From positions 1 to 40,874 of the forward strand of contig JAADVB010000172.1 in the NCBI GenBank assembly GCA_023334545.1: a DNA stretch of 40,874 bases. The letters are read 5' to 3'. Positions 6,025 through 9,400 of the stretch are shown piece by piece; the stretch's first letter is position 1; every line of letters starts with the position of its first letter. The notes under the pieces were generated by a model. That model did no database searches and was not told the origin of the DNA. It saw nothing but the letters and a program-made list of their open reading frames with translations. A program made the position numbers and the translations under genes. The DNA is from Salisapilia sapeloensis CBS 127946. Lineage: Eukaryota > Protista > Oomycota.

Positions 6025-6843
6025 TCATTTTGGTATATGAACGCGTACTACAGTTTCCTCCCTTCTAGATGCACTTTTTAATACAGTAGGTTCTGCTAGT
6101 GAAAGAGCACAGCTAGCTCCAACGAAATTTGTGCCGTTTTCAATGCCTACTCGATTGGATGCTAAAAAATGGCAATTTGGCTTTGGATAGTTTCCACTCT
6201 GGAGTTGGTCGATGACTGGGGAAAGTCGAGTTGCCCAGTAGTTGAGGGTCGGAAGCGTTTCGTTACTTTCTGGCTCAAAATCATTCCAGGCGCAAGAGAA
6301 GAGAATGAGGTCGCTACCGTGCTCCAGAACGTGATTCGCGAACTCAAAAGCTGAGAACTCAGCGACAAAGTCGAATGGATTGATGTCCATGCAGATACCA
6401 AACGAGATCGTCTTGTCCAACCAGTCACAATACCAGCTTGTGAATCCATCCCCTGGAGTAGCCCATGATTTGTCCGTCTCGTATAAAAACGTCTTGCGAG
6501 GATTACAGACGAGCTGTCCATCAGGGCTCACCACCATCATGGCGTTGTAAAGAGTCGACGGATCATCCGGATCTCTTTCAACGTACCCACAAGTGACGAG
6601 GCACTGTAGACGACGAGCGTGACGCTGGCACCACTCGAATGTTGGTCCGCTTCCTGCAAGCTCAGCTAGGGGCTCGACTTCGGATTTTGTTTTAAAAACA
6701 TACCCAGTGAAGATCATTTCTGAGAGCACGAGGATATCAATGTTATCATCCTTGTGCAGGGATTCGACCATTGCATCCACGTGGTCCATGTTGTGCTGAA
6801 CTTGCCCGATCACAGGCTCACACTGGACGATAGCGACTTCCAT
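6025..6843 (-). CDS. NTA1: Protein N-terminal Asn/Gln amidase, yeast Nta1 type (nitrilase superfamily)
   Basis: Start at ATG 6843 (MEVAIVQCEP). Nitrilase triad motifs VLSEMIFTGY (E), RKTFLY (K), GICMDINP (C), plus Nta1-type FEFANH and LFSCAW. Confidence 0.88.
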   Translation of the reverse strand: MEVAIVQCEPVIGQVQHNMDHVDAMVESLHKDDNIDILVLSEMIFTGYVFKTKSEVEPLAELAGSGPTFEWCQRHARRLQCLVTCGYVERDPDDPSTLYNAMMVVSPDGQLVCNPRKTFLYETDKSWATPGDGFTSWYCDWLDKTISFGICMDINPFDFVAEFSAFEFANHVLEHGSDLILFSCAWNDFEPESNETLPTLNYWATRLSPVIDQLQSGNYPKPNCHFLASNRVGIENGTNFVGASCALSLAEPTVLKSASRREETVVRVHIPK

Positions 6844-7277
6844 CTCCTCTTCGATTAAATTGTGTCCATGCTTCTTGTTGAGGTTACCGATTATTGGTTG
6901 TGTGATGAAATGTATCAAAAACACAAATAAAAGTTGATTGTTACTTTTTTATGCATGTGGCGTCGTCTCAGTGCTGAGCAAATATGGACACTTCAGCTTG
7001 TACAATTGAGTACGTGTAGAGCTGCTTTGAATATGTAATGTTGCTTTTCATTTAGCTATAAGCAAATGGAAAGAATAGATGTGGTGGATATAGAATGGGA
7101 ACATGTCAACTGCATTTGCTATCGTGTTGAATTTATTGTTGACGGTAGCATGATGGAGATACTGTGCAAGTTACTCCAATAAGCGTGTGATCAGTTTGGT
7201 AAACGAGTTGGTGTAAAACTTAAGACGTGTATTATCATCTTACAAATGCGATTGCACAGCATGTACCTGCATAATTC

Positions 7278-8183
7278 CTACTTGGCTCTGCAAGGCTGCT
7301 TCGAGGATGGTGATGGTGTCTCTGCATCCATCTCTCCTTCGTTGCCCTCTGCCTCATTGGCCGTATCCCTGTCTTTATCATCATCAAACGAAAGACCAGT
7401 GCTGCCTTCGGTGTCCGTAGGTTTTTCATCGCTCGTGTTCTCGGTTGAGTTTCCACCACCGCATTGCTCTACTTGAGCAGGGATACCAAACTTGTAGTAC
7501 TGTTCGAAATCATCGTTACTTCCTTTGAACTGCTCCGACACAATATCATTGTCGTAAAAGTACATGCACTGATCATCTCCTTTACCCTCAAGCTTGGTTA
7601 CGCGGTCGCCGCCAACAAATGTTGGACAAGACGGTTCCTCTCCATCTCCATCCGAAGTTAGATGGATGTCAGCACAAGAGCGGAATTGTGGTTCCATCCA
7701 ACCAATGTTGCCAAAGCTGGATCCAACGCTGTGCCACGTCCATTGCAGCACATAGTCTCCTTCCGGTAACCAATCAGGAAGAGTGATCGTATCTCCGCAG
7801 CTGATAGTAAAATCACCACTGCCGTCACTGGCGTACCGAGTGTTCTCTCGATTGGGTACACACTCTGGACCAGATTCTCGGCAAGTATAAAAGAAAACGT
7901 TGTCATCAAAGTTTTCCTTGGTCTCTTCGCCTAGAGGTACCATCGCCCAACGAATAAAGCCGCCGAGGTGATTGTTGCGCCAGTACCGGACGTCAATAGT
8001 TTCACCGGGTGAGTAAGAGGTTGATTCTCCGGGACCATCGACTGGACACCCCATCACGTTCTCCATATCCGGGGTAGAAGAATCTATTCTTGATACGGGC
8101 TCGACAAGATACGAATGTCCAAGTACGGTCGACCCGTACATGTTAAACAGAGAGAATGCGATCGTAGTAACTGAGAATTTCAT
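7278..8183 (-). CDS. Secreted LPMO-like (putative copper His-brace) protein with Cys-containing second module and acidic tail
   Basis: ATG 8183 and 22-aa signal-like leader MKFSVTTIAFSLFNMYGSTVLG, followed by His1 (codon 8115-8117). HSYLVEPVSR; second His in RNNHLGGF (7968-7970); LPDWLPEGDYVLQWTW; QFRSCADI (Phe codon 7683-7685). Confidence 0.75.
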   Translation of the reverse strand: MKFSVTTIAFSLFNMYGSTVLGHSYLVEPVSRIDSSTPDMENVMGCPVDGPGESTSYSPGETIDVRYWRNNHLGGFIRWAMVPLGEETKENFDDNVFFYTCRESGPECVPNRENTRYASDGSGDFTISCGDTITLPDWLPEGDYVLQWTWHSVGSSFGNIGWMEPQFRSCADIHLTSDGDGEEPSCPTFVGGDRVTKLEGKGDDQCMYFYDNDIVSEQFKGSNDDFEQYYKFGIPAQVEQCGGGNSTENTSDEKPTDTEGSTGLSFDDDKDRDTANEAEGNEGEMDAETPSPSSKQPCRAK

Positions 8184-8225
8184 TGCCAATAGCAGTGGTT
8201 GAAGTAGTAGCTGGATGACAGAGGC

Positions 8226-8241
8226 AAATTTAAAAATGAGC
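8226..8241 (-). promoter_or_regulatory. Oomycete Inr+FPR core promoter (perfect consensus match)
   Basis: Minus strand GCTCATTTTTAAATTT matches GCTCATTYBNNNWTTY; predicted TSS ~8237, 54 nt upstream of ATG 8183. Confidence 0.8.
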
Positions 8242-8725: not shown

Positions 8726-9400
8726 CTACTGCTTTAGATGCTGCTGCACGACTCTGTTTACTATTTGTGGTATCTGTTCTCTCATGTCAGTGACCTTCTT
8801 TGGCGTCACATACTCCTGTAGGCTTTCTTCTAATTGCATCCCTACCTCCTTTTTGCATAGGTAGTCGGCGACAGCGAGTACGTATACACCGCAGTCATAT
8901 CCATTCTCTTGCTGTGGGCTATCTGACATCTCTTTCACGGTCAGACACTCATTGGATCCCACTCCTTCCCCCTTTTCATTCGCTAGCAAAGACTGGAATT
9001 GCTTTGCAACACGCTTTGCTGCAGCATGGTTCGAGCCGGCACAAGAATCGTAGTGTTCTAGGACAGCGGACGCCCGACGGTAGACGCACAAAGACCAATG
9101 ACTACTACTTCCTCCCAAGCTCTGGTTGTCACTAACAGGAATAAAGCAAACTTGTTTTTCAGCTAACTGGATCCCACGCGCAAGGTCAGCAAACTCATCA
9201 CCATCGTCACATTGGAGGACCATACACGAGACCACAGTCGGGTCCATCAGAACCACCTCGTTATTCTTACAGCATATCGTGTGCTGCAAATGCTGCAAGT
9301 AAAAGTTGATAGCATTGTCATTGAGCCACTGATTTGTATGAAAGAGTGCTACGTCCGACTCGTAGAGCTGGACATCGTCATACACATGCAGAAGCTTCAT
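8726..9400 (-). CDS. SENP8: NEDD8-specific protease (DEN1/NEDP1, Ulp1/C48 family)
   Basis: LYESDVALF...WLNDNAINFY; catalytic HWS, HYDS, QQENGYDCGVY; 224 aa. Confidence 0.9.
   Translation of the reverse strand: MKLLHVYDDVQLYESDVALFHTNQWLNDNAINFYLQHLQHTICCKNNEVVLMDPTVVSCMVLQCDDGDEFADLARGIQLAEKQVCFIPVSDNQSLGGSSSHWSLCVYRRASAVLEHYDSCAGSNHAAAKRVAKQFQSLLANEKGEGVGSNECLTVKEMSDSPQQENGYDCGVYVLAVADYLCKKEVGMQLEESLQEYVTPKKVTDMREQIPQIVNRVVQQHLKQ

Follow-up and report, generated by a model that had tools for sequence, protein, structure and literature searches.

A probable secreted LPMO-type copper oxidase of Salisapilia sapeloensis from a conserved oomycete clade labelled 'AA9'

The gene at positions 7278..8183 on the minus strand of a 40,874-nucleotide stretch of Salisapilia sapeloensis DNA (contig JAADVB010000172.1, hereafter the window) probably encodes a secreted copper-dependent oxidase of the lytic polysaccharide monooxygenase (LPMO) type. 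It belongs to a conserved oomycete clade that carries the label 'AA9', in which it appears as the orthologue of Phytophthora infestans PITG_08631.

The coding sequence is complete and intronless: 301 codons and a stop codon form one unbroken ORF, read from 8183 to 7278, for which no spliced model is needed. All of its features lie on the minus strand. Full-length homologues match with E-values down to 4e-107, which puts the gene far beyond chance. An oomycete Inr+FPR-like core promoter element, GCTCATTTTTAAATTT, is located at 8226..8241 on the same strand, which places it 43-58 nt before the ATG. A pattern search finds this element once in the whole window and in 0 of 100 shuffles, and no other ATG occurs between it and the start codon, which bears out the original prediction that the element backs this start. 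Three unspliced, transcript-like contigs of 983, 991 and 989 nt, assembled from runs X2-X4 of one sample, span 7223..8213 (minus strand) and nothing else, with 0 differences and 0 gaps; they comprise the coding sequence with a 5' leader of about 30 nt and a 3' trailer of about 55 nt, and a fourth run contributes a 161-nt piece. Because the contig ends coincide with the limits of the gene, the contigs resemble assembled transcripts more than genomic DNA, and they support an unspliced mRNA, although they cannot prove its strand or exact ends. That the runs are RNA is only a guess, and on these 'expression-like contigs' the gene is probably expressed. The flanking ORFs on the minus strand are 6025-6924 downstream, which was read as a putative Nta1-type amidase in the original prediction, and 8726-9400, of 224 aa; no sign of a CAZyme cluster was seen around the LPMO-type gene.

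The protein starts with a signal peptide, residues 1-22 (MKFSV…STVLG; 8118..8183), whose n-region carries a single basic residue and which also has a hydrophobic core, with V at -3 and G at -1. The predicted cut after VLG obeys the (-3,-1) rule. Among 37 homologues, 31 have A and 6 have G directly ahead of the invariant histidine, with V, T, A, I or S at -3. Cleavage there would expose His23 as mature His1 (8115..8117), as originally proposed, and this predicted N-terminal brace residue is invariant in 38/38 and 36/36 homologues and is the point at which the structural alignments with LPMOs begin. The predicted second brace residue is His72, mature His50, in the motif RNNHLGGFIRW (7968..7970), again invariant in the 36 trimmed homologues, and the predicted axial aromatic is Phe167, mature Phe145, in EPQFRSCADI (7683..7685), which aligns with the Tyr of AA9 QNYPQC. 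The earlier counts, 50 for the histidine of NNHLGG and 145 for the phenylalanine of QFRSCADI, agree with these positions, and the core motif LPDWLPEGDYVLQWTW is present as described. Gln147 (mature Gln125) in YVLQWTW, at 7743..7745, is a candidate second-sphere residue that is conserved in 36 of 36 homologues.

Nine cysteines are found in the 301 residues, at positions 46, 101, 108, 129, 170, 186, 206, 241 and 298. Three of these (Cys186, Cys206 and Cys241) fall in a C-terminal segment, residues 186-245 (7449..7628), which is part of the catalytic fold according to the AlphaFold2 model and the AA11 and AA9 alignments. The folded domain is followed by an acidic and probably disordered tail, residues 246-301 (7281..7448), of which both length and sequence vary among homologues. 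The acidic tail had been recognised correctly: its 56 residues include 16 D/E against 6 K/R, 25 of the 56 are S, T, P, G or N, and its pI is about 4.05. Near its end lies the presumably unpaired ninth cysteine, Cys298 (7290..7292), followed by basic residues in the terminal C-R-A-K, and a Cys with K/R near the C-terminus is found in 37 of 60 homologues. The very end, KQPCRAK, is polar and basic and contains no hydrophobic stretch.

AlphaFold2, run on an alignment of 36 sequences, predicts one confident domain that comprises mature residues 1-223 (7449..8117) with a pLDDT of 94.2 and a pTM of 0.92. A Foldseek search of the PDB with this model returns AA9 as the best match (4e-6, probability 1.00), followed by AA11, AA15, AA10, AA16 and AA13, with low TM-scores of 0.3-0.47. 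When 48,161 representative chains are searched exhaustively with VIA-align, 22 match at Z >= 8; all of these are LPMOs or LPMO-like copper proteins, and all 22 (Z 8-11) align from model residue 1. By family, the Z-scores are 11.0 for AA11 (4MAI), 10.2 for AA10, 10.2 for AA15, 9.9 for AA9, 9.4 for AA13, 8.5 for X325 and 8.0 for AA16, and AA17 (8S71) is the lowest among the LPMO families compared with a Z of 6.5 and 12% identity. That the protein adopts an LPMO-type beta-sandwich with conserved brace positions is thus a well supported prediction of the modelling. The alignments with AA11 and AA9 reach model residues 216-223, which identifies the stretch from Cys186 onwards as the C-terminal wrap of the catalytic domain. 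A separate C-terminal module was considered and rejected on the grounds that there is a single modelled fold, that in AA9 and AA11 the stretch has its counterpart at the C-terminal end of the alignment and that the AA11 profile covers it.

These results uphold the core of the original prediction, a secreted LPMO-like protein, in that the model has the LPMO fold and all three brace positions are conserved; its description as divergent also holds, the protein having no close membership in any structurally characterised family. The further Cys-containing module that had been described (SCPTFVGG .. QCMYFY .. EQCGG) is present in sequence from Cys186, but it is not a separate module, as it packs into the single confident fold. 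Nor is the protein compact, since its folded part of 223 residues is about the size of an AA9 or AA11 catalytic domain. The short spacing between the two histidines, which had been taken to point to small copper proteins, is nearest to that of AA11, and the protein has no GPI-type hydrophobic C-terminus. The kinship with AA15 and AA10 that had been read from HxxLxEPxSR and FRxCADI is weak, with Pfam LPMO_10 absent from the protein and found in 1/36 relatives at 0.002, and AA17, which had been raised as a comparison, turns out to be the most distant LPMO family compared (Z 6.5). The suggestion of a novel candidate subfamily does not stand: the gene belongs by orthology to a family conserved among oomycetes whose members already bear the names putative LPMO, AA9 or chitin-binding type-4 in public records and which was analysed as 'AA9' in PMC7720654.

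At the sequence level, Pfam gives sub-threshold matches only, to DUF7492 at 17.7 bits (cut-off 27) and to AA9 (PF03443) at 12.7 (cut-off 27.8), and there is no match to LPMO_10 (PF03067) at E <= 1. NCBIfam has no match, and a single-sequence search of PDB chains gives chance matches only. Among 36 relatives, DUF7492 is matched by 25, AA9 by 23 at E < 0.01 (best 1.1e-10) and LPMO_10 by the one already mentioned. The profile of the oomycete family, when compared with PDB sequences, matches AA9 at 5e-5, AA15 (5MSZ) at 0.01 and AA11 at 0.8, and finds no chain of AA16 (7ZE9) or AA17 (6Z5Y, 8S6S, 8S71) at E <= 10. In the profile alignments His50 falls on a His of the AA9 HHGP stretch and on the His of AA11 H-G-G, Phe145 on the axial Tyr of AA9 QNYPQC, and Cys46 and Cys170 on the Cys at the AA9 early-Cys and axial+3 disulfide positions. 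The second-sphere Q-x-Y motif of AA9 and the N/Q/E-x-F/Y motif are absent, their place being taken by P-Q-F, and so is the conserved Q-T/N-Y motif of AA16. A profile of the wider relatives finds AA11 as its best match at 8.7e-10, in an alignment that extends from His1 across the C-terminal segment, then AA9 at 1.7e-7 and MtAA16A of AA16 at 3e-6. Taken together, the scores of the two profiles place the clade between AA9 and AA11; judged from profiles and model, the protein is about equally far from both, with AA15 and AA16 next. The name 'AA9' for this clade is therefore an annotation label and not a tested membership. Three other assignments were considered and rejected: a kinship with AA10 and AA15, which LPMO_10 matches do not support, an X325-type copper carrier, for which a GPI signal is missing at the C-terminus, and AA18, a name that belongs to an unrelated new family.

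A word-index protein search retrieves 58 proteins with 38-68% identity over the aligned part, and the named sources are all oomycetes. They include P. infestans PITG_08631 (XP_002903988), which is named 'putative lytic polysaccharide monooxygenase 9', and a tandem series from Pythium oligandrum whose members are called 'Auxiliary Activity family 9 catalytic domain-containing protein'. The family profile was built without P0030 (Globisporangium splendens) and P0058 (Phytophthora nicotianae), whose public models look mis-predicted; P0030 has an extended N-terminus and no signal peptide, and P0058, which is named a C-type lectin, has a frameshifted core region. In the trimmed alignment of 36 sequences His1, His50, Gln125, eight cysteines and a GGDR motif are invariant. 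The axial column holds F in 22 sequences, Y in 13 and W in one; two residues before it the family has P, G or V, giving P-Q-F here and G-N-Y in one subclade. A maximum-likelihood tree groups the window protein with its Phytophthora and Nothophytophthora orthologues in a 99/99 clade in which all members have P-Q-F. This grouping, together with the homologues, identifies the window gene as the orthologue of a conserved oomycete gene and not an isolated oddity; it is orthologous to PITG_08631.

An oomycete 'AA9' family is known to be expanded in mycoparasitic Pythium, with 16 copies in P. oligandrum and 17 in P. periplocum against 1-5 in plant-pathogenic Pythium, and with six in Phytophthora species, a figure that is ambiguous between a count per species and a total (Liang et al. 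2020, PMC7720654). Part of the copies form tandem arrays, and for several of them induction is seen during mycoparasitism or on prey (Liang et al. 2020). In the supplement of that paper, the sequences printed for the C-termini of PyolAA9-1 and PyolAA9-2 match the relatives P0039 and P0041, and the family of the window gene is therefore the 'AA9' family of Liang et al. A literature search for PITG_08631 and DUF7492 found nothing, and one for an enzymatic characterisation of any member of the clade had the same outcome, so that activity is read here from fold and residues alone.

A profile search that covers all 1.84 billion representatives retrieves 466 proteins at E <= 1e-3, of which 241 (clusters at 50% identity) match at E <= 1e-10. 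Among the 141 matches listed beyond the word-search set, 21 touch Pfam AA9, with a best value of 1.4e-7, and these weak matches imply that none of the 141 is a canonical AA9. The same 141 include five proteins with CBM18 chitin-recognition modules (P0094, P0140, P0131, P0170 and P0093), one fusion to a GH18 chitinase (P0174), three with ricin-type lectin modules (P0126 among them) and one with a CBM2. Such CBM18, GH18 and lectin fusions are hints, at the level of domain architecture, that the wider family may target chitin or other glycans. Its named members come from Blastocladiomycota (Paraphysoderma, Allomyces and Catenaria) and Amoebozoa, and further relatives from metagenomes. The best fold match in the ESM Atlas is a Zoopagomycota cluster with a TM-score of 0.70 over residues 1-218, and feature matches from the Atlas serve as leads only. 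It is conceivable, if somewhat doubtful, that the clade constitutes a distinct LPMO family which automatic annotation has filed under AA9 or 'chitin-binding type-4'. Such a family would be shared by oomycetes, Blastocladiomycota and Amoebozoa, and by fold Zoopagomycota, and would have its own substrate range (chitin or another glycan of fungal or oomycete walls), an axial site that varies between Phe and Tyr, and a dimerising tail Cys.

Five paralogues of the window gene were found in the same 22-Mb assembly (G000). Three are long, about 475-483 aa, L004 at 1279-2700 of C967, L005 at 1381-2808 of C505 and L011 at 586-2034 of C767. None of these retains the axial aromatic, Y or M takes the place of the second brace His, and only two of the three still have His1; an insertion of about 200 acidic, Ser/Gly-rich residues separates the core from the C-terminal Cys segment. 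From their sequences, all three look like pseudo-LPMOs. Two paralogues of canonical type, L007 (G000 C658:15358-15711) and L008 (C1101:3019-3372), are cut by contig ends; they have an axial Tyr, and over residues 129-263 they show 48-53% identity to the window protein. The identical profile scores of L007 and L008 and their truncation at contig ends suggest that they may be one locus assembled twice.

The analysis shows the gene, contigs that look like its transcripts, the fold, the conserved residues and the place in the family; for the mode of action, we infer copper binding, catalysis, substrate and dimerisation. Cleavage of the signal peptide would free the amino group of His1, which together with its imidazole and with His50 would hold a single copper on the flat face of the beta-sandwich, with Phe145 in the axial position beneath the metal. 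Once reduced, the copper would react with O2 or H2O2, leading to the oxidation and breakage of glycosidic bonds in an insoluble cell-wall polysaccharide, for which cellulose or another beta-glucan, or chitin, are candidates. The lone Cys near the end of the tail, with the basic residues that follow it, could possibly form a disulfide that links two molecules. CoAA9A of Colletotrichum orbiculare is known to dimerise via the disulfide of a tail Cys (PMC10990093). Its disordered tail and X283 motif are like the window protein in having a lone near-terminal Cys with acidic residues before and basic residues after it, a likeness of pattern only, and by analogy Cys298 may mediate dimerisation.

A role as a wall-polysaccharide LPMO is considered most likely because of the conserved brace residues and the alignment of Cys46 and Cys170, the induction of relatives on prey, and the CBM and chitinase fusions of distant relatives. 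Against this role speak the axial Phe, the missing second-sphere motif, Pfam scores under the AA9 and DUF7492 cut-offs and the existence of at least one AA16 that has a perfect His brace yet cleaves no polysaccharide (PMC10088020). A distinctly improbable reading is that of a His-brace copper protein which cleaves no polysaccharide, either an H2O2-producing oxidoreductase, as reported for MtAA16A, or a copper handler of the X325/Bim1 type. The fold and the brace are common to X325 (Z 8.5) and AA16 (Z 8.0), but the catalytic families AA11, AA10, AA15 and AA9 all outscore these two in VIA-align. One distant relative matches Pfam BIM1-like at 2e-5, yet the KQPCRAK end of the window protein is not a hydrophobic GPI-type C-terminus, and other relatives are fused to CBM18 or to a GH18 chitinase. 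That a normal brace need not bring polysaccharide cleavage is illustrated by MtAA16A, which has the one and lacks the other (PMC10088020), and in three paralogues of the same genome the second His is lost, which suggests that the fold also serves with an incomplete brace. Set against this is the induction of family members during the attack on prey walls (PMC7720654).

The two remaining alternatives concern family membership. A pectin-active AA17 LPMO would share with the window protein an origin in oomycetes, to which AA17 is specific, secretion and a disordered tail after the domain (PMC8615602, PMC8393829). However, the family profile has no match to 6Z5Y, 8S6S or 8S71 at E <= 10 as opposed to 5e-5 for AA9, and 8S71, which is PsAA17B (PMC11992081), scores below every other LPMO family listed at Z 6.5 and 12% identity. 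This leaves AA17 highly improbable, and the lack of a profile match together with the low Z of 8S71 serves to exclude it. It is rather unlikely, while deserving more weight than the other alternatives, that the clade is a member of the CAZy family AA16, namely the oomycete clade 5 of X273 (Filiatrault-Chastel et al. 2019), and that these are the proteins which older dbCAN runs called AA9; this would change the label only, the mechanism being the same. The numbers invite such an identification, as 5.7 X273 genes per oomycete species are reported for Phytophthora and Pythium (Filiatrault-Chastel et al. 2019), to be compared with the six 'AA9' in Phytophthora species, per species or in total (PMC7720654), and Sabbadin et al. 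give the Peronosporales only AA16 and AA17. The profile of the wider relatives moreover matches MtAA16A at 3e-6, whereas that of the oomycete family has no match to 7ZE9 at E <= 10. The Z of 8.0 lies under those of AA11, AA10, AA15, AA9 and AA13, and the Q-T/N-Y motif is absent from a family that has P-Q-F, or G-N-Y in one subclade. The supplements of the AA16 papers and of the crayfish-plague paper contain no oomycete accession lists.

LPMOs are used on recalcitrant biomass and act as virulence factors. To our knowledge, AA17 is the only LPMO family of oomycetes to have been characterised biochemically. The window gene is one more orthologue of an oomycete LPMO clade that had already been noticed, and on its own it alters nothing. 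What is gained besides is a better idea of where that clade belongs: it is not AA17, it lies at the edge of AA9 and AA11 and it has distant relatives with chitin-binding and chitinase fusions. This makes the clade a sensible choice for a first biochemical study.

Among the known systems, the AA17 proteins of Phytophthora (6Z5Y, 8S6S and 8S71) resemble the window protein in their oomycete origin, secretion, His-brace fold and disordered C-terminal tail, but sequence similarity is undetected and the structural score (Z 6.5) is the weakest. AA9, AA11, AA15, AA16 and AA17 all use an axial Tyr (PMC10088020). With fungal AA9 (7OVA, 4B5Q and 2YET) the window protein has in common His1, the H-x-G of the second His, the G-x-Y-V-L strand, the aromatic-x-x-Cys, the flanking Cys and the C-terminal wrap. 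Unlike these, it has Phe where they have Tyr and lacks the second-sphere Q-x-Y, and its second His, at 50, comes far earlier than that of the aligned AA9 chains; identity in the structural alignments is only 13-23%, and the protein stays below the Pfam cut-off. The chitin-active AA11 of fungi (4MAI, 7P3U and 9EXJ) is the best structural match, with a Z of 11.0 over 152 residues that cover model residues 1-217, and has an early second His and the Y-T-L-x-W-T-W-F strand in common with the window protein. AA11 differs in its axial Tyr and in the X278-type module, which is absent from the window protein, and the oomycete profile reaches it at only E 0.8.

The closest known counterparts are the 'AA9' proteins of Liang et al. 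Compared with these, the window gene is an orthologue of the single-copy type, outside the tandem expansions of mycoparasitic Pythium; the window protein has Phe where the expanded G-N-Y subclade has Tyr, and its tail is acidic and not Ser/Thr/Pro-rich. Common to both are the positions of His1, His50 and the axial residue, the pattern of eight cysteines, the C-terminal segment, a variable tail and, at its very end, the Cys-basic motif.
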